NCBI GenBank assembly: GCA_965235115.1
Contig: OZ249439.1
Location: 14,942,001-15,006,000, forward strand
Length of the DNA: 64,000 nucleotides
Direction of reading: 5' to 3'
DNA from: Laetmonice hystrix
Lineage: Eukaryota
The position numbers and the translations under genes were made by a program. Positions within the stretch are counted from its first letter, which is position 1; every line of letters starts with the position of its first letter. Under the pieces are notes generated by a model. That model had not been told where the DNA came from. It did no database searches and worked only from the letters and a program-made list of their open reading frames with translations. Below, piece after piece: positions 42,374 through 53,194 of the stretch.

Positions 42374-43426
42374 TTACTTGTCTTCCTTAGTCAAGTTACC
42401 AGGTGAATTGTTGACATTTCCTATGCCAGGCTGGCTGTCTGTGGCTTCCACCCGGAAGTAATGTGTCAATCCTTGACTCCAGTTTCTGTATTTCTGTATA
42501 GGGTTTCTCACTCGGCGGTGGATGGCCGGTTTTGTCGCTGCTATCTCGTTGTCGCCATCCAAGTTGTCCAGGAAGTCAATTGCATCCTGGAACTTCCGGC
42601 TGACTCTCATTTGCTTGCTGATATCACAGCGTGTATTAGCACTCGTTTGCTCCTCTCCCTCAATCAATTCATCCAAATGTTTGTGTTTCTTGTCTTTCAT
42701 CACCACGCGGCCGGTGTTGGGCGTGCGAGCCCGGAGAGATTCGATTGCTGACTCCGGGTGTTTGTCAGTAAGGTTCTCCACCAGTCGATCCTCGTAACCC
42801 TTCATCATGGCGTACTGAGCTTCCGGAGACAATGTGGCACAGAACCGTGGTGAATCGGTCACAATCTCGCTGTCATCATCCGAGTCATCGTCAACGTATT
42901 CTCCCTCGGCGTGGTTCGCGCAATACCAAATCCGGCCCAAGGCGACATTTTCGCCTTTTTTACCTTCTTTCTCTTCTCTTTCTGGTTGCTTCTGCTGGCG
43001 AGCGGACTGTTTTACAGTCTGCGTTACCCGCTTGAGGTTTGCCATGTAGAGTTTCCTAAACATGGTCATTCCAATTACTGAGGGTAACGGGGGCAGTCTG
43101 GACCTAAACTTTGAATCGACCCCATTGGTGAGCACAGCACAGACGGGGCGTCGCGGTGACCTTGGAGAGGTCAGGTTGGAAGGACGAGGGCCATCCGATC
43201 GTGACGCCATGTAGGTGGGCGGAGGAGCAAAGGTGACACGCTTCTGATGGGTTCTGCCTCTGGTCGACCGACCTGCCTTACCACCGGGTTCTGCATTCAA
43301 ATGAGGTGGAGATGAACTATCGGCAGAAATATTGCTGCTACATGCAACAAGCGTCTTCTGTGCCACCACCTCAGACCAAACCTGCAATGTATCGCTCTCA
43401 AACTTTCCTCGTAATCTTTTATCCAT
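42374..43426 (-). CDS. Intronless uncharacterised protein, family member P1 (350 aa)
   Basis: First ATG is at 43426 (the ORF track starts on an upstream TTG). It shares ordered motifs with 46787-47842 and 49208-50293: F...TLQVWSEV, RLPPLPSVIGMTMFRKLY, LSPEAQYAMMKGYEDRL, RTP, FQDAIDFLDNL, NPIQKYRNW. Confidence 0.85.
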   Translation of the reverse strand: MDKRLRGKFESDTLQVWSEVVAQKTLVACSSNISADSSSPPHLNAEPGGKAGRSTRGRTHQKRVTFAPPPTYMASRSDGPRPSNLTSPRSPRRPVCAVLTNGVDSKFRSRLPPLPSVIGMTMFRKLYMANLKRVTQTVKQSARQQKQPEREEKEGKKGENVALGRIWYCANHAEGEYVDDDSDDDSEIVTDSPRFCATLSPEAQYAMMKGYEDRLVENLTDKHPESAIESLRARTPNTGRVVMKDKKHKHLDELIEGEEQTSANTRCDISKQMRVSRKFQDAIDFLDNLDGDNEIAATKPAIHRRVRNPIQKYRNWSQGLTHYFRVEATDSQPGIGNVNNSPGNLTKEDK

Positions 43427-44912
43427 GGTCGCTAGATCTATGGCCGTCCTACTTGACTTCAAGTGTAGGACAATTGGCAGTATAATTTTGTTTCCTTGAA
43501 TCCGTTGTTCTGTGGCATCATTTACTAAATCACACTCAAGGTCATGGTACGGTGAGACCTTTTATTGGCATTTGTCAGTTTTGTATTCTTGGTGAATCCT
43601 ATGTGTTCGCCCGCGTGGTAACTATGCACACTTTGAATAGAAGAAGCGGGCGAGAGAAGGATGTCACAGGTTGCCCTGTGGTTGTATCCGGGCCAGTGCA
43701 TCCAGGCGATGGAGGTGTGTCGTTGCTGTTGATCAGATTGTGTTCAGACGAATACTAAGTTCTTATTTTGCACTAGCTTACTCCCATGTACAATAACCAG
43801 AACCAATATAAACTTATGACCCGTATTGCCCGTTGAAAACTCCAGGAGACATTCATCTGTTGGGATCAACCAATAAGCTGATCCGATAGTTTCTGCTGTG
43901 CCACCGGTCTTGTTGATCAAAAATTATTGTGATGTTGGAGGCCTACTTTACAACATGTGGCGTGGGATCTTAGCCAAATCTTAGGCTACACCATGCAGAT
44001 TAACTTGGTGATATTAAACATTGTAAGGCTTTCAACAAACATTGACCTCAGTGGGGTATTGGCTGGATCTGGCTGGTTGTCCGATTTAATATAACCCTTA
44101 GTAACACAAAATAACTGGCGTATACAACGAGAGAATAAGTCTGATACATAAATTTGTTGTATCCGCAGCTATCTTATTTGTCACAAGCACACACCATTGT
44201 AGCATGGTTTAGACCAAGGTTCAGATACACGCCTGGAATGACCAATATGTATGCAAGGTCGGGGTCCTTTAACTATTGGATAGAATTCGTATACAGAGCA
44301 AGGCAAGGGTAAAAGTAATCCAAAATGACGGCAAAATATTGAAGTATACATGTATATTGAGTACCTCAACTTGCTCATCTTTTAAGGCTTTGAAGTGAGC
44401 CGGATGTAAGTGTATTCCCAGATCAGAGGGTGATGCGGCCCTGTATTGAGCGCTAGTTTCAGTAAGTAATAACTAGCGCCATCTGTTAAGCGTGTACATT
44501 GACGTTTTATTTTTATTTAGTTCCATTAGAAGGCGCTCGGGGCTCTCTCAACGAAGCCTTTGCTCCCAGCGATCTCAAGGTGTAACAGCTAGTGGTAGAC
44601 TTTCCCATTAGATACAATTTGTATGGTAGACACAGCTGGGTAGATTCCAAGTATAATATCCTTCTACAAGTCAACAAGTATATGACAGGTAATTTATTAT
44701 GACAATATCAATATTGAAGTATGTTGATTCCCGGGATACTGCCTCAATAGATGGCGCCAGTATCCCCCATGCCCATGCTGTCCACCAGCTGAAAGGTTAT
44801 TGATATTGTGTAAAGGTGTAATATGTACTGTTGTTGCATTCAGTTGAGGGTAATAGAATGTGTTCCCTTGGCAGCATAGCTATGACCGTGAAGTCCGGTC
44901 CCGTAGCCACTG

Positions 44913-45836
44913 TCAGCTCTTCTCATTCAGTGAGATATTGGATACTAGTCCAGCAAGCAGGGGGAAGGACATGTTCAGACCTCTGGTGACCGCCTCATTA
45001 GAACCGTTGGAAGATTTATCGTCATGTTCGTTTGGGCTTGTCATCTTCGCCTCTTTTCGCGCTTCCCACATCTTCATTCCAAAATCAACGTTCTTCAGAC
45101 GGTAATCTCTCAGGTTGCTACTGTCCTCTTGAAGCAGAGGATGCCTATTTGATGGAACATCGACAAAAGGTCTTACCGAGGGCTGTTCTTTCTCCGCCAT
45201 CACGGCCTCGCTAGCCTTGGGCACGTTATGAAGAGGTCCAAGTATTCTGTGCAGGCCACAAACAGCCGGTGGTCCTGGGGTGTGACCCGCAGGCAATTGG
45301 ACGTTGTTTCCTGTGGTGTGACCCGCAGGCAATTGGACGTGGTTTCCTGTGGTGTGATCCGCAGACAATTGGACGTTGTTTCCTGTGGTGTGACCCGCAG
45401 GCAATTGGACGTTGTTTCCTGTGGTGTGACCCGCAGGCAATTGGACGTTGTTTTCAACACCGCCTGTCGATTTTGGCGGCGTCTCTGCCCTCGTATCTGT
45501 AGCCTCTCCTGAACTTTCTTCCCTGACAGAAGATTCGAGATCTGTTTGAAAGGTCTGACGCTTGACATTCCCCTTGTGTCGGAGTTTCCTGGCCTTACGT
45601 TTGGGCCGATATTCCAGGCTCTCTAGAATTCCGAATCGGCGAATACTATCGGATGTGATCGGTGTCTCGCGTAACTTCCGGCCAGGAGCGTTCCTGGACA
45701 TGTCTAAACGAAACTCGGTCTGCGATATTAATGTTTTGTCTGAAGTACACAGACCGACTCCAGGTGGCACTTCCACTAAGTACCTTAAATCTTTCCGAAC
45801 CGTTACGTCACTGTGGAATATCCCAACTTCAGTCAT
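44913..45836 (-). CDS. Intronless uncharacterised protein (307 aa) with five in-frame 12-aa repeats
   Basis: ATG-to-stop ORF with natural composition. NNVQLPAGHTTG occurs x5 in frame. No recognisable domain and not alignable by eye to P1-P3. Confidence 0.65.
   Translation of the reverse strand: MTEVGIFHSDVTVRKDLRYLVEVPPGVGLCTSDKTLISQTEFRLDMSRNAPGRKLRETPITSDSIRRFGILESLEYRPKRKARKLRHKGNVKRQTFQTDLESSVREESSGEATDTRAETPPKSTGGVENNVQLPAGHTTGNNVQLPAGHTTGNNVQLSADHTTGNHVQLPAGHTTGNNVQLPAGHTPGPPAVCGLHRILGPLHNVPKASEAVMAEKEQPSVRPFVDVPSNRHPLLQEDSSNLRDYRLKNVDFGMKMWEARKEAKMTSPNEHDDKSSNGSNEAVTRGLNMSFPLLAGLVSNISLNEKS
45273..45452 (-). repeat. 36-bp coding tandem repeat x5
   Basis: Period 36 (e.g. TGTGACCC at 45281 and 45317); frame-preserving within ORF 44913-45836. 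Confidence 0.9.
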
Positions 45837-46786
45837 GGTATTCTGTGATCCCCAATACTAATCAACTGCAGGGTGGGTCTGCATCACCTGTAAATTGCCA
45901 AGTTCGTTCACAGTGCAAGTACTTCTGCCAAGAACATCTTTATCACAAATCAAAAAGATGCGTGTTGAGACGATTTGTTTTATACATGCTTCGAAAGCGT
46001 TAATCCTTACCAGTCTTAATCCGAAATAAACAGGCTTAACGGGAATTAGGAAGGTCCGTATCCTGGCGCCAAGTAGACTACTTTAAACGGGTGCTAATGA
46101 CTCCACAGATTTAATTTCCAATCAGAAGTCGGATTAGTGACGCTTTCTCTCTTACACATCAGACCGGGACAAGACGCTTCATAACACGCTGATCGAGTAT
46201 AGTTACCCTCCATGGGGTTGTCGCCACAAAATATTAACTAGTTACTAATTAATAAAAATTGTTAAGAGCAAGGAGCATACGACTACTATTCATTTACCAA
46301 TTCTGGATGTTCTTTATTATAAAAATCACAAATCAAACCTATGGGCACATAAGTATGCAAGTATCTCAAGTCGACGCTCTTACGCGTCTGCCCTATCCAA
46401 GGCGGCTGCGGCTTTTCTTATCTCTTGCAATCTTCCGCGAATTAAAAATTAATCAATAGAAAATAAAGTATAGAGATAAAATCGAATTTGCTTCAGTAGG
46501 AAACATATAAACACTCTGCTTAACTTATCAAAGTCCATGCACGTCACATTATCTTGTTTGTTGTAGAAAAAACTATAGAAACGCCGCCAAAATATGTCCA
46601 ACTCCTATCTATAGATTGACGCCTCTTACATCCACCCATGATGTATGTTAAAAGTGCACGGTCACTATCCTAGTAAGACAAACGATATTCCGGATATAAT
46701 GAGGATGCCCCCATACCTTGTAAACTACACTTATCATCACGCATGGTGTATCTCGAGTAACCCTCCATGTGGTCAGTTGGTCCCCC

Positions 46787-47842
46787 TCAGAACCTGTTGG
46801 TGTTCAGGTCAGAAAGGTTGGCCGTATCGAAGTCACTCATCCATTCGTTACACCAGCGTTTGAATTTTAAGATTGGGTTGTCGTGTTTCTTGACCCGGTA
46901 GCCGTGCTGGTCCCGGCGCAGGTCTGGAGGGGCTTCTTGTTCAGGATGTTCCCGGAGACTGTCCAGGAAGTCGATGGCCGCCTTGAAGTTTCCACTAATC
47001 TTGGCCCGCACAGATTGGTGGCCGACACAGGGGTTGAGTGACACCCGCCGGTTTCTGGGAGTACGCGGGCGGAGAGTGTGCAGGCCGGACCGGGGATGTA
47101 TTTGGCTCAGCTGCTGGATCAACATATCCTCGTAACCCATCAACATAGCGTACTGCGCCTCGGGGGACAGTCTCGCTGTGGGTCGCTGAAGCAACGATTT
47201 CTCGTCTTTTCGGTCAGCAGGTTCCTTTTTCTTTTCTCCTTGTTGCTTTTCTTCTTCTTGCATCATTTCTGACATTCGCTGAAAGAGGACAAGTCCGACG
47301 AGAGACGCTAACTGAGAACTAAAATCGCACTCGGTGTCGTCATTCAGAATGTCGTCACTCAATGTTTCAATTGTGTTATCAAAATTGCCTTCTGCTGGGG
47401 CTGAGGGGTCCAGCTTGGCCTTGGCTCGGGCAAGCGCCCTTCTCCGGGAAACCTCAGCCCAGACTTTCATAGCCACGTCCCTGAATGCCCGTCTCTTGAC
47501 TTTAACAGGGACCGAGTGCTGGTTTGCCGAGTCGAACCGAGGCTTCCAACCGTTGGTCATAAATGTTACCCCCTTGCCTGTGCGGGACGGAGGGTTCCAC
47601 TTCCTACTACTGTCACCCTCGGCTGTGGGGGTTGACCTGCCACCGGGTGTGTACGTCAGCCGCCGGGTGGGTGTGCAAGCCGAGCGGACCGTTGTCACGG
47701 CCATTGTCGACCGACGACGGCCCTCATGGGGGAACAACTGCCCGGTCCGAGAGACTAGTTTAGGCAGACGTACTCCCGCTGGTCCGACCGATTCTACACC
47801 TACTCTACCAGCAACATTGTGGGGTTTCAGTACAGACAACAT
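46787..47842 (-). CDS. Intronless uncharacterised protein, family member P2 (351 aa)
   Basis: ATG-to-stop ORF with motifs AFRDVAMKVWAEV, LASLVGLVLFQRM, LSPEAQYAMLMGYEDML, RTP, FKAAIDFLDSL, NPILKFKRWCNEW. Confidence 0.87.
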   Translation of the reverse strand: MLSVLKPHNVAGRVGVESVGPAGVRLPKLVSRTGQLFPHEGRRRSTMAVTTVRSACTPTRRLTYTPGGRSTPTAEGDSSRKWNPPSRTGKGVTFMTNGWKPRFDSANQHSVPVKVKRRAFRDVAMKVWAEVSRRRALARAKAKLDPSAPAEGNFDNTIETLSDDILNDDTECDFSSQLASLVGLVLFQRMSEMMQEEEKQQGEKKKEPADRKDEKSLLQRPTARLSPEAQYAMLMGYEDMLIQQLSQIHPRSGLHTLRPRTPRNRRVSLNPCVGHQSVRAKISGNFKAAIDFLDSLREHPEQEAPPDLRRDQHGYRVKKHDNPILKFKRWCNEWMSDFDTANLSDLNTNRF

Positions 47843-49207
47843 TATGTCTTTCTCCTTAGTCCAAGCTACAAATATGGACGCTATCCTTTACAGTGATCGT
47901 CTCCTGATTGTGTAGTGAGATTGTGAAAGTCGATGGGCACAGGTGATTGCTGGGTAGTTGGCCCCCTCTGTACCTCTCCTACCGGTGCAATGTTTAAAAT
48001 GTATAATTAGGAATAAAAGTCATATTACGACAGATGTCAATTAACAGGTCCTTGCTTCAAACAGCTTCCAAAATAACAATGTCAAATGACGTCACTAGTA
48101 AGCGGATACAAGGATTATAACGCAGGTAGGTCGAATACATACCTGAATTAACCGTGGGCCTAGCAACCTCAAATTCTTTTCTGCGCTACATAATCCCGTA
48201 AGTTTTTGCTCAAACACCATCACGACTTTTTGAAAGGTAATTACTGATTAGTAACACACATATAGGTGTCACCCCAGATGAAAGCTTTATTATTTCTACA
48301 AGTAAGGGTTGGCACTTCTTTCATTTGGCCCCTGTTCCTAAACGGTATCAGCTATGCATCAATTATACATGTATGTCGGGCTGCACTACTGGCACAGTTG
48401 TGACACAGACGTTATATCATACAATTAATTACTATCCAGACGTGTCGATACAAAGCCTGTCCATGTACTGATATCCATGTATACGATCGGTTTCCCTACA
48501 TCCTGGCACAATTCTTGGCTATATCTATGGTCCTGTCTGTATAGAAATCTATCTCTCTCCCGTCTGACCATTACCTCTATGTTTCACTGCCACTGATTCT
48601 ATAGGTTTCTCTTACAAGGTGGCACGACGAGTAAATGACCTTTCGAGTTAATATGTACTACACTAAACAATTGTCGATGGTGATTATATGGAGACCGATG
48701 GGTCCATTTAAACCGAACTTTCTTTTCTTCACTGTTAAAAAAACATTGATGAATGAGGATATCGGCTTATAGGTTAAATGCCATTGTTTGTTTCAGCCTC
48801 ACGGCTCAAATTATTAAGTGCAGCTGAGCTAAGTGCACGTAAGTTGGTAACGCTGAGCCGAGGTTTCTGGTTCGTGACTGTGGTTAAAAGGCGACAAATG
48901 AACTCGAGATTAGAATCTGTAAAAGGTACTGCTATACCGTGCTGATTAACAAACGGGGCAAACAATGTAGAGTCTGCATTGTTTTATAAGTAAAACGATT
49001 TTTTTGTTCTCGAAAGCAAGGGCAGGTTCTGTGTGGTATTGGCACGTTGACAACAAGAGGCAGCATGTGATGTACTGACGTGTATCTTGCATGTGACTTC
49101 AAAGGGACTTTGATACTGAAAATGGTGTGTCCCATGGTGTGAGGCTGAGGGATAAAGTAACGTTCTGGGTCCCTGTCTGAGAACAATCGGCGAGCTGTTG
49201 TCGAGGT

Positions 49208-50293
49208 ATGGCACCATCAACGTCTCCGCTGCTGGATGGCACCTGCTCCGTGCCGCTCTGTCTCCCGGCTATCGACCGGCAACAAAAGTTCATCGTATGT
49301 GTCAGTCCACGTCAGCTTCCAGGTCATGTCGACGACTCTCGCCACATGGAGGACGAGGAGGAGGAGAGGAAGCAGGAGGAGGAGGGGAAGCAGGAGGAGG
49401 AGGTGAAGCAGGAGGAGGGGAAGCAGGGGGAGGAACGGAAGGACCAGAAGAAAGACAAGGAAAGAGAGGATAACCCAGGGGACGCGGCCGGGGGCAGGGT
49501 TCGCTTCCGATCAACTGCCCTCAGGGTCTGGGCGGCCGTGGCCATCGACAGAAACACCCTCCACCCTGACAATCACCAGACCAGGCCCCAGTTGGACACG
49601 GCCCGTCACAGTGAGTTGACTTGCCCAGACCCACACGATGCTCCCGACGGACAAAGCAGTTCCCCTAACAAGTCTCTCGGAGACGGCAAGAGACCTCAGC
49701 TCCAAACAAGAAAATCTTACATGAAGATTACCCCCTGGAAAACCCGGCTTCCTCCGCTCCCGTCTATAGTCGGCATGCACGTGTTCCGACGTCTCTACAT
49801 GGCGCAGCTTTCGGGAATCCACGGCAGTACGAAAAGTGAGCGACGTTCATCAGTCAGGGACAGTGACGAGGACGAGTTGATTGAGCAGGAGGATGGCCGC
49901 TGGACCGAGCCCCGTCTGGGTGCCGATCTATCCCCGGAGGGACAGTACGCCACCCTCCGTGGCTACCAGGACCGACTCCAGCAGAAACTCACCCAGCGAC
50001 TCCCAGAGATCCGTTCCCAGATCCCGCGGCTCGAGACCCCGGCCGTGGTGTCCCGGCTGGTGGTGACGGCAGCACGTCCGGAGGTAGCCAGGACCCGAGT
50101 CCAGCGCTGCCTCCAGGCCGCCATCGACCTGGCTGATTCCCTGGAGGTGGACGGAGAAAACCACTTGTCGGACGTGAAGAAATCCCGCATTAAACTAACC
50201 ACCAACAGTCCACTGAGGACGTACATAAGATGGTGTCGGAGTTGGGAACAAGACTTTACAACTGACAACGAATCAACTGTGCCTGCCACCTGA
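49208..50293 (+). CDS. Intronless uncharacterised protein, family member P3 (361 aa)
   Basis: ATG-to-stop ORF with motifs RFRSTALRVWAAV, RLPPLPSIVGMHVFRRLY, LSPEGQYATLRGYQDRL, LQAAIDLADSL, SPLRTYIRWCRSW. There is an E/K/Q-rich short repeat near the N-terminus. Confidence 0.87.
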   Translation: MAPSTSPLLDGTCSVPLCLPAIDRQQKFIVCVSPRQLPGHVDDSRHMEDEEEERKQEEEGKQEEEVKQEEGKQGEERKDQKKDKEREDNPGDAAGGRVRFRSTALRVWAAVAIDRNTLHPDNHQTRPQLDTARHSELTCPDPHDAPDGQSSSPNKSLGDGKRPQLQTRKSYMKITPWKTRLPPLPSIVGMHVFRRLYMAQLSGIHGSTKSERRSSVRDSDEDELIEQEDGRWTEPRLGADLSPEGQYATLRGYQDRLQQKLTQRLPEIRSQIPRLETPAVVSRLVVTAARPEVARTRVQRCLQAAIDLADSLEVDGENHLSDVKKSRIKLTTNSPLRTYIRWCRSWEQDFTTDNESTVPAT

Positions 50294-50547
50294 TGCTTTC
50301 CATCTCTATAACGGACACGTTGAGCTTTACAACCGCTAAATCATTTATTGTACATGTTACCTCACAGAAGTGTACAGCTGACAGGCGGCTTTACAACCGA
50401 TTAGAAACCACTAACCGTGCCTGTCACGTGATGACCCAATATATTTAATTACAACCAACACACAGGACTTTACAACTGAGAACAAATCGACCACGCCTGC
50501 CACCTGATGGCACGCTGAACTTTACAACTCATGTGGGAATCAACTGT

Positions 50548-50562: not shown

Positions 50563-51693
50563 CTGACTGCGAATGACCTGCTCTGTCGTTTGTAAATCGT
50601 TTGTAAATCGTTTTGTTGATGTGATGTTGCATGGGTACACATACTAAAATTGTTGTTACGTTACAGCGATAAGAGAATGGGCATTATTTTATATAATTAT
50701 GAAGATATTATATCTTGTGAATATGAAATAATGAAAATTAAAGTATTTTTCTATAACTATTTTAATGTCTTTCTGTCTGATCCGTAAACAAGAAGGCAGG
50801 TAAATGACGAAGGGTGATAGAGTCGGCCGTGGTTTACAGGATTGGGGGAGGGGGTGTGCCCTCAGTTGAGGTTAGGTTCGAAAATATCCACAGTTGGCGG
50901 GTACCAAGATCCGATTCAACCCAATCAATCCAGTTTAAAGGTTAGAGAAGCTCTGCCCCCCCCTTAACGGTAGCTGATTAATTCTAGAATTTAAACTTCA
51001 GTTGTCCATGTCTACTCCAGTGTGAAACGTTCACATGGGGAGGGCCGCTGATTATGATTATGATTATGTGCCACATAAGGGGCCGTGAATTTCAGTCACA
51101 TGTATAATTACAGACTGTAACAACGTGCAACCTTTTGACCCCGGAGATGAAACGAATTATGTACGCACCTGGATGAGAAGTACGATGTCTTATTTTTTGT
51201 TTACTTACGGTATTTCTTTAGCTTTGTTAGCAGAGATCAGTGGGTCCCTTGTTTTCACCGATACTTACAGATCCGATGGAATGCCTTCCAGGGAACTCTA
51301 GCGGTAAACATGTTGACGTTGTTACACAATCGATTCCCGGAAAAGAGTAGGTTGTGTTAATAATGGATTGAAAAGCTTATAACCGCGCTACATGTTATTT
51401 TCCCGTGTATAAGAGACCAGAAAACAGAACAGATATAACCTCGATTCAAGCAATGCTGCAGGGAATGCTTTCCATCTTCCACGTAGAGCAGTTACAACTC
51501 AGAAAGAAAGATTGCGCTAATGGTGATCGGGAATACCTCCACAAAGACCGAAGTGGTGGTATGATGATGATGAAACGTCACAACTATTGAATAGCTCCTT
51601 CAGGTGACTTATTTTATTTCCCACTAACAACCTTACAGGAGCGTTGCAATATTTATTGGGCTTCTTCCCGCTGAACGACTTGTGAGGTACACA

Positions 51694-52638
51694 ATGCCGC
51701 ACAGACTGCCGCCTATGGCTGACTCGCCCCGGGATCCTGGCGGAGTTCCCTGTGGTTCGTGGCCGCCGGGGATGGGTGGGGGAAGATGGATGAGAGAGAA
51801 GTTAGTGGTCGAGGAGCCGTCCAGGACCCACTCCCTGGAGGTAACGGTTACAGGTGAGGTTCGGCCTGGACCGTGGATGAGAGAGAAGTTAGCGGTCGAG
51901 GAGCCGTCCAGGACCCACTCGCTGGAGGTAGCGGTTACAGGTGAGGTGAGACACTCCCTGGAGGTAGCGGTTACAGGTGAGGTTGAGTCTGGACCGTGGA
52001 TGAGAGAGAAGTTAGCGGTCGAGGAGCCGTCCAGGACCCACTCCCTGGAGGTAACAGTTACAGGTGAGGTTGAGTCTGGACCGTGGGCTCCCAGCACGGA
52101 CGAGGGTGGGAGCGGCCTCGATTCGGACCGTCACATCACGGGTGTCAACCGGAACACCTTGCCCCCTCTCTCACCCCTTACAGAGGCTACCCTCACCCGC
52201 AAACTCTCCACAGCGGGGTTAACCGGCTCACCCTGCCCCCTCAACCGGCACCCTCTGCCCGGTCTCAGAGACAGACACCTGTCAATCAAATCGGAACCAA
52301 TATCAACCAACCCGGAGCAACTGTCAACCGGTCCCGAACAGCTGTCAATCAACCAAAATATGGTGTCAACCGATCCTGAGCAGATGTCCATGGATTCAGA
52401 CGAAACTGTCAACCAGGACGATTCTCTACAATTACACTTACAACAACCGGCGCACACCGCTGACTCTCTGGCCCCAGAACTAGGGCATGATGACCTAATT
52501 AACCCCACAATGCCACGCCCTTCTCGTGTTTTTCTTACCCCACTACCGCGATCGAAGAAACGTCCCAACCTGTACCTCTCACGGCCAAGTATAGCCCGCA
52601 TTGCTGCATACACTGTCAGTGACGGAGAGGGAGAATGA
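51694..52638 (+). CDS. Intronless low-complexity uncharacterised protein (~314 aa) with three 29-aa repeats
   Basis: First ATG is at 51694 (the ORF track starts on GTG). It has in-frame 87-bp repeats (WMREKLxVEEPSRTHSLEVxVTGEV..GP) and a basic Pro/Arg-rich C-terminus. No recognised domain. Confidence 0.5.
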   Translation: MPHRLPPMADSPRDPGGVPCGSWPPGMGGGRWMREKLVVEEPSRTHSLEVTVTGEVRPGPWMREKLAVEEPSRTHSLEVAVTGEVRHSLEVAVTGEVESGPWMREKLAVEEPSRTHSLEVTVTGEVESGPWAPSTDEGGSGLDSDRHITGVNRNTLPPLSPLTEATLTRKLSTAGLTGSPCPLNRHPLPGLRDRHLSIKSEPISTNPEQLSTGPEQLSINQNMVSTDPEQMSMDSDETVNQDDSLQLHLQQPAHTADSLAPELGHDDLINPTMPRPSRVFLTPLPRSKKRPNLYLSRPSIARIAAYTVSDGEGE

Positions 52639-53194
52639 AAGGCCAAGTATAACCCGCACTGCTTCATACACTGTCAGTGATGGTCAAGTATAACCCGCAC
52701 TGCTTCATACACTGTCAGTGATGGTCAAGTATAACCCGCACTGCTTCATACACTGTCAGTGATGGTCAAGTATAACCCGCACTGCTGCATACACTGTCAG
52801 TGATGGTCAAGTATAACCCGCACTGCTTCATACACTGTCAGTGATGGTCAAGTATAACCCGCACTGCTTCATACACTGTCAGTGATGGTCAAGTATAACC
52901 CGCACTGCTGCATACACTGTCAGTGATGGTCAAGTATAACCCGCACTGCTGCATACACTGCCAGTGATGGTCAAGTATAACCCGCACTGCTGCATACACT
53001 GTCAGTGATGGTCAAGTATAACCCGCACTGTTGCATACACTGTCAGTGATGGTCAAGTATAACCCGTACTGTTGCATACACTGTCAGTGATGGTCAAGTA
53101 TAAGCCGCACTGCTGCATACACTGTCAGTGATGGTCAAGTATAACCCGCACTGTTGCATACACTGTCAGTGATGGAGAGGGATAATGAAAGGCC
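52587..53194. repeat. Array of 12 x 41-bp units bracketed by two 58-bp units, the first of which is the end of the CDS 51694-52638
   Basis: 52587-52644 and 53137-53194 are near-identical 58-mers. 52645-53136 is exactly 492 bp = 12 x AAGTATAACCCGCACTGCTTCATACACTGTCAGTGATGGTC. Confidence 0.95.

Follow-up and report, generated by a model that had tools for sequence, protein, structure and literature searches.

A published screen lists 37 genes that are conserved in molluscs, annelids and flatworms and are undetectable outside Spiralia (Wu et al., 2020, Nat Commun 11:4171; PMC7441323). Two products of this screen, lophotrochin (CGI_10008733) and trochin (CGI_10005224/5 and CGI_10014227), have been described as spiralian-conserved and undetectable by BLAST outside Spiralia (PMC7441323); lophotrochin contains a DUF4476 domain and a AGGHQGYAALGGLYTQ motif, and trochin is a protein of ∼180–215 amino acids (aa) with a YGYGYHE motif. 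The oyster gene CGI_10016852 appears on the same list without a name or description. Here, we describe three paralogous open reading frames (ORFs), P1, P2 and P3, that belong to the same family as CGI_10016852. They lie in a stretch of 64 000 nucleotides from the annelid Laetmonice hystrix (contig OZ249439.1 of assembly GCA_965235115.1, positions 14 942 001–15 006 000), which is referred to as the window and to which coordinates refer unless otherwise indicated. P1, P2 and P3 are probably three functional protein-coding genes with a single coding exon each, representing diverged members of an unnamed family, and the statements made below on their identity and on the selection acting on them are very likely to hold.

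P1 (42374–43426, minus strand), P2 (46787–47842, minus strand) and P3 (49208–50293, plus strand) are each listed as a single-exon coding sequence of 350, 351 and 361 aa plus a stop codon, respectively, and all three proved to be intact, with the positions, strands and lengths claimed for them in a preliminary description of this DNA. The length of P1 is counted from the ATG, past which its open frame extends to a TTG at 43462, and the stop-to-stop frames of the ORFs start 9–45 codons upstream of the ATGs. P2 and P3 are divergently oriented and are separated by a spacer of 1365 bp. Pairwise identities among the three proteins are 26–35%, and tblastn E values of 2e-20 (P1/P3), 1.8e-15 (P1/P2) and 6.5e-14 (P2/P3) place their likeness far beyond chance.

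The six conserved blocks in identical order that had been noted in the three proteins were recovered in MAFFT alignments, from which their positions in the window were computed. Blocks 1 and 2 are located in the N-terminal half; the former has the pattern F..AL.V(W/L)..V and the latter is a basic helix. In P1, block 1 (FESDTLQVWSEVV; 43364–43402, minus strand) is a predicted amphipathic helix and block 2 (RLPPLPSVIGMTMFRKLYMA; 43040–43099, minus strand) a predicted basic helix, as judged from the alignment and from an AlphaFold2 (AF2) model. The corresponding segments are FRDVAMKVWAEVS (47447–47485) and SQLASLVGLVLFQRM (47273–47317) on the minus strand in P2 and FRSTALRVWAAVA (49505–49543) and RLPPLPSIVGMHVFRRLYMA (49745–49804) on the plus strand in P3. 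Block 2 includes RLPPLPS in P1 and P3, compared with RRPSF in the family consensus. Blocks 3–6 make up a C-terminal three-helix domain, which spans 42443–42871 in P1 (minus strand, residues 186–328, from alignment columns), 46817–47203 in P2 (minus strand, residues 214–342, the sequence used for modelling) and 49889–50269 in P3 (plus strand, residues 228–354, from the alignment). Four ordered motifs in this region, PRF...LS.EAQ(Y/F)A..KGYED, R..(T/S)P, A(M/I)D(I/F)LD and P..(Y/F)..W...W..(E/D)F, are present in all three proteins, with deviations restricted to GYQD in P3, replacement of the second Trp by Leu in P1 and a change from PR to RP in P2. The core consensus across the family runs LP..PRF..TLS.EAQYAMLKGYED.L...L....P.....L.R.(K)TP in its first part and continues with L.LTYRFQ.AMDILD ... 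G...TSPR ... PV..YN.W...W..EF.

The closest described relative, CGI_10016852, has the same block order as P1–P3, with PRFSSSMSPEAQFAMMKGYED, RRNKTP, LTYRLQSAMDMLD, SPR and P..F..W...W..EF in succession; it is also of comparable length (325 aa) and likewise disordered in its N-terminal half. It differs in reading AMDMLD where P1–P3 read AIDFLD, and in having a long serine-rich loop with RRxS and RxxSLP sites, whereas the equivalent loop of P1–P3 comprises ∼28 residues and lacks such sites. The correspondence was established through the supplement of Wu et al. (2020; PMC7441323, Supplementary Data 1), where the family consensus string is found within CGI_10016852; a family member of 325 aa (P0061), which matches the family profile with an E value of 9.8e-25, is near-identical to this oyster protein. 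The published alignments of lophotrochin and trochin show no sequence resemblance to the P1–P3 family. Literature searches with motif strings, locus tags and accessions returned no paper beyond Wu et al. (2020). As far as the searched literature goes, the family is catalogued in the 2020 list and is neither characterized nor named.

The extent of the family was assessed by an exhaustive search with a hidden Markov model built from seven sequences: P1–P3, two further L. hystrix paralogues (P4 and P5; see below) and two orthologues. At E ≤ 1e-3 it returned 266 family representatives (clusters at 50% identity), of which 171 reached E ≤ 1e-10 and 31 reached E ≤ 1e-30. Among the matches listed, which are the best 150 of the 266 and most of which carry no taxon, all named members are ‘hypothetical’ or ‘uncharacterized’ proteins of annelids (Paralvinella palmiformis and Owenia fusiformis) or molluscs (Lottia, Plakobranchus, Lymnaea, Mytilus spp., Pecten, Mizuhopecten, Ylistrum, Tegillarca and Pinctada). 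One weak match in the AlphaFold DB, A0A7D9I0X0, may be cnidarian, which we presume from its accession prefix. The proposal that P1–P3 define an unnamed family therefore stands in part: the family has no name, Pfam model or known fold, but with at least 266 representatives it is not defined by these three genes. A first word-indexed protein search found only two relatives; one with the 150-sequence alignment performed poorly because the words were drawn from unalignable N-terminal columns; and one limited to the domain region returned bivalve members only.

In the L. hystrix genome (627 Mb searched) the family comprises five paralogues, all on one chromosome, on which the window occupies C4:14.94–15.01 Mb; a second search with a 141-member domain profile added none. 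P4 (C4:20743411–20743884, at 20.74 Mb and 5.8 Mb from the window) is a continuous ORF of 374 aa from its ATG, and P5 (C4:22556150–22556788, at 22.56 Mb and 7.6 Mb from the window) is a continuous ORF of 385 aa. Both are nearer to the family consensus than P1–P3 and retain the long Ser-rich loop. Against the 141-member profile, which includes all three window proteins, P1 scores 135 bits, P2 60 + 33 bits and P3 54 + 38 bits.

P1–P3 are rich in Ser, Thr, Pro, Arg, Lys, Asp and Glu, their disordered N-terminal half includes an acidic stretch, and inspection revealed neither a signal peptide nor a membrane segment. In an AF2 model of full-length P1 based on seven sequences, 206 of the 350 residues have a predicted local distance difference test score (pLDDT) below 50, so that the characterization of the proteins as mostly low-complexity is roughly right; helices are predicted at blocks 1 and 2, and pLDDT reaches 80–90 in the C-terminal part only. 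The domain of P2, modelled with 141 homologues, has a pLDDT of 84.3 and a predicted TM-score of 0.76, with helices at residues 14–35, 62–85 and 110–122 and two short paired strands. The C-terminal domain is thus confidently modelled as a compact unit of three helices and two short strands. In the N-terminal part of P3, a Glu/Lys-rich stretch is encoded by an imperfect tandem repeat of 18 bp (or 33 bp) at 49356–49434. Sequencing depth is doubled over this repeat and public contigs have loose ends there, suggesting length variation or related repeats elsewhere.

The preliminary description had recognized no named domain, and our searches agree. Pfam scans of 20 whole members and of 141 C-terminal domains (the latter at E ≤ 10) gave nothing near the gathering score, and no Pfam family recurred in more than two of the 141 domains. 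Sequence searches of the PDB with two profiles gave only matches to single helices (DUSP and SMC) at E values of ∼0.7–1, which were treated as chance. A relationship to dual-specificity phosphatases through the helix ‘FQEAIDFID’ was considered and rejected, since the match (E = 0.7–0.8 over 33 residues) does not include the catalytic HCxxxxxR loop. Fold searches, which had been suggested as a further check, gave nothing significant beyond presumed family members. Foldseek gave no match with E < 1 in the PDB and none in the Swiss-Prot section of the AlphaFold DB, and shape and feature searches of the ESM Atlas were without a match. In the AlphaFold DB clusters, the highest Foldseek probabilities were those of ranks 1 and 6 (0.92 and 0.51); ranks 1, 6 and 10 are uncharacterized proteins of 294–353 aa that are matched at their C-termini and are presumably family members. 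They include K1QXY5 (325 aa), which we take to be the UniProt entry of CGI_10016852 on the basis of the matching length and the accession prefix. VIA-align returned assorted helical bundles with a best Z score of 6.5, which is regarded as noise because this range is ordinary for helical models with this tool. The PDB bundles concerned (VANGL2, the SS18/BRG1 complex, the DAXX four-helix bundle and the Cbl four-helix bundle) have up–down packing in common with the P2 domain, but their Z scores of 5.2–6.5 over 76–98 residues at 3–9% identity are within noise.

A maximum-likelihood tree of the domain groups P1 with P0001, P2 with P0083 (98%) and P3 with P0005 and P0009 [99% in the Shimodaira–Hasegawa-like approximate likelihood-ratio test (SH-aLRT)], all within one clade (96%) on long branches. 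P4 groups with P0003 and P0004 and P5 with P0006, both inside a large consensus-like clade. The best orthologues of P1 are P0001, with 49% identity in the domain, and an open frame at locus L009. Since P1, P2 and P3 each have an orthologue of their own elsewhere, the triplication predates the corresponding speciations. In assembly ERZ26168297, a single contig carries the orthologues of P1 and P3, ∼23 kb from each other and oriented relative to one another as in the window; no orthologue of P2 turned up in the parts of this contig that were examined, which exclude ∼3.1 kb of the interval between the other two. In ERZ25767047, orthologues of P3 and P2 form a tandem pair with a distance of 6.4 kb, seen on two contigs that resemble haplotigs, and the P1 orthologue is on a separate contig. 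P2 and P3 are divergent in the window and tandem in ERZ25767047, which indicates an inversion in one lineage. P1–P3 are a fast-evolving, locally triplicated and old subfamily of the larger family, as read from these sequence comparisons, and the earlier suggestion of local duplication is borne out by their single clade and by the linkage of their orthologues in other assemblies.

The origin that had been proposed for the founder gene fared differently. The absence of introns next to a 27-exon gene had been taken to suggest retroposition, but members in Lottia and Owenia are likewise annotated with a single coding exon, of 1245 nt (414 aa and a stop codon) and 1920 nt (639 aa and a stop codon), respectively, and all of P1–P5 are continuous ORFs with a single-exon coding sequence. 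The intronless coding sequence is therefore ancestral to the annelid–mollusc family and did not arise locally, and a retroposed founder is not supported. The Lottia member (locus L013, 8652–13245) adjoins an FCH/SH3 gene of PACSIN or FCHSD type; the window showed no comparable neighbour, and synteny is thus not conserved on that side.

Selection was evaluated from orthologue comparisons and from variation within a sample. Synonymous divergence (dS; NG86 method) between orthologues is above 1.5 or not computable, i.e. saturated, and dN/dS is consequently not estimable; the nonsynonymous divergence (dN) and its contrast between domain and linkers are usable. Between orthologues, dN is 0.27–0.53 in the domain and 0.5–1.0 elsewhere, and all orthologue frames in the two other assemblies are open despite the saturated synonymous sites. 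Open frames, saturated dS and a domain dN of about half that elsewhere uphold the view that P1–P3 arose by old duplication under selection. Within-sample variants were taken from the three public runs that contain the stretch, all DNA contigs of one sample that span intergenic DNA. P2 as a whole carries three synonymous and two nonsynonymous variants and P3 six synonymous and nine nonsynonymous; in P3, the C-terminal domain accounts for three synonymous and one nonsynonymous variant and the remainder for three synonymous and eight nonsynonymous. The only coding indel seen is a 6 bp in-frame deletion in a P3 linker. Although the numbers are small, this pattern fits a constrained domain joined to nearly free linkers. 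Over 44400–50390, the one-sample contigs show ∼40 differences from the assembly in 6 kb, ten of which are within the 1365 bp P2–P3 spacer. This density indicates that the individual or population is highly heterozygous (∼0.7–1.4%).

A possible function is suggested by short motifs. In 150 members, RRxS/T occurs 2.55 times per protein compared with 0.73 in shuffled sequences (3.5-fold), with at least one copy in 84%, and RxxSxP occurs 0.59 times compared with 0.19. An Rxx(S/T)P site directly after helix 1 is kept in 62–95% of the members of each clade, and RxxTP is retained at this site in P1–P3. The loop connecting helices 1 and 2 is 91–102 aa long (median) in the two main clades, where it holds many RRxS/RxxSxP sites, compared with 28 aa and no such sites in the P1–P3 clade; the Ser-rich loop with RRxS/RxxSxP, which is absent from P1–P3, is typical of the family but not universal. 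Because typical members carry conserved RRxS/T sites, our best reading, held at clearly less than an even chance, is that family members may be intracellular adaptors switched by basophilic kinases. In such a mechanism, the C-terminal helical domain would serve to bind a conserved partner, and kinases of the types of cAMP-dependent protein kinase (PKA), cGMP-dependent protein kinase (PKG) or Ca2+/calmodulin-dependent protein kinase (CaMK) would act as switches on the disordered parts. With the fold and the RxxTP site kept, the loop cut and RLPPLPS in block 2, P1–P3 would probably be less regulated or differently regulated variants.

In its mode of action, such a protein could be compared with DARPP-32 and inhibitor-1, which are disordered intracellular proteins with basophilic-kinase sites including R-x-x-T-P. 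They have no folded C-terminal domain, unlike P1–P3, and they have no sequence or Pfam match to the family, in which the RVxF motif is not enriched.

Several points weigh against the readings given above. No public RNA run of L. hystrix was found to cover the stretch, the three runs that contain it being DNA contigs, and a noncoding or short coding exon may lie upstream of the ORFs. As to a kinase-switched adaptor, the argument is built from motif enrichment and architecture, and disordered proteins of many kinds often contain short basic-serine motifs. RxxSxP is carried by only ∼37% of members in the mollusc-type clade and ∼12% in the P4/P5 clade, and by none in the P1–P3 clade.

The alternative that retains most weight, although we consider it rather unlikely, is that the family belongs to ciliary bands or multiciliated cells, as do lophotrochin and trochin, in which case P1–P3 would act in larval or adult ciliated cells and would perhaps link cAMP/PKA signalling to ciliary beating. 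CGI_10016852 is on the same 37-gene list as lophotrochin and trochin (PMC7441323), the enrichment of RRxS would fit regulation by PKA, and eight further list genes were placed in oyster ciliary-band clusters, of which four are named (Piovani et al., 2023; PMC10396302). The identifiers of these eight genes are given in figure S16 of that paper only, as an image, leaving a prior of ∼8/35 that the family is among them. In Tritia, however, 18 of the 20 list genes tested by in situ hybridization are expressed ubiquitously (PMC7441323). No RFX X-box was found near P1–P3; the window has nine matches compared with 13 expected, and none lie within 41.8–64 kb.

It is considerably less probable that each ORF is just the final exon of a larger, multi-exon gene and that the true proteins are longer. 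The open frame upstream of each ATG leaves room for such an extension, but the eukaryotic annotations of the Lottia and Owenia members show single-exon coding sequences, and the orthologues begin with a Met placed shortly before block 1.

A role for P1–P3 as regulators of protein phosphatase 1 (PP1) that dock by RVxF is very improbable and was dropped. RVxF-like strings do occur in all three proteins (KRVTF in P1, KGVTF in P2 and RVRF in P3) and in the P1 orthologue P0001. Across the 150 members, however, the motif is found 0.24 times per protein compared with 0.26 in shuffled sequences, with 18% of members carrying one; it follows block 1 in P1, precedes it in P2 and is fused to it in P3, and is lacking in P4 and P5. 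The motif is therefore neither enriched nor at a homologous position.

The least plausible alternative, that P1–P3 are pseudogenes or young retrocopies, decaying or under neutral drift, whose frames are open by chance, could draw on their long branches, on the scores of P2 and P3 against the family profile, which are far below those of P4 and P5, and on the excess of nonsynonymous variants outside the P3 domain, but it is largely refuted by three open frames of more than 1050 nt with orthologues that have stayed open in two other assemblies at saturated synonymous sites, by the conserved blocks, by the lower dN of the domain and by a sole coding indel that is in frame.

An ORF of 307 aa between P1 and P2 (44913–45836, minus strand) has no resemblance to the family and contains, at 45273–45453, five copies of a 36 bp tandem unit (95% matches) that encodes NNVQLPAGHTTG; in Pfam it gives only a weak match to a cuticle repeat (E = 0.023), and public contigs break at the repeat. 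On the other side of P3, tandem repeats of 87 and 123 bp (94–95%) at 51633–52638 give rise to overlapping ORFs of 154 aa (minus strand) and 318 aa (plus strand), which are probably repeat artefacts rather than genes, and at 52644–53175 a 41 bp unit is repeated 13 times in tandem (97% matching).

Genes confined to one clade and conserved over ∼500 million years may underlie clade-specific biology, and this family is large, with a strongly constrained core of ∼130 residues, and has no domain model, structure or name. To the list entry that previously represented it, the present analysis adds a domain definition and consensus, a fold model, five paralogues in one annelid, an ancestral single-exon coding sequence and an old linked three-gene subfamily without the predicted regulatory loop. 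P1–P3 themselves are ordinary members of an uncharacterized family and are of moderate interest. A broader proposal, doubtful as a whole, is that the C-terminal module is a new domain confined to Spiralia with a partner of its own, that the family is among the ciliary-band genes of spiralian larvae and that P1–P3 are an offshoot without the loop. If this were true, P1–P3 would be an annelid-lineage offshoot that has shed the kinase-regulated loop, and regulated and unregulated versions of one module could be compared within the family.

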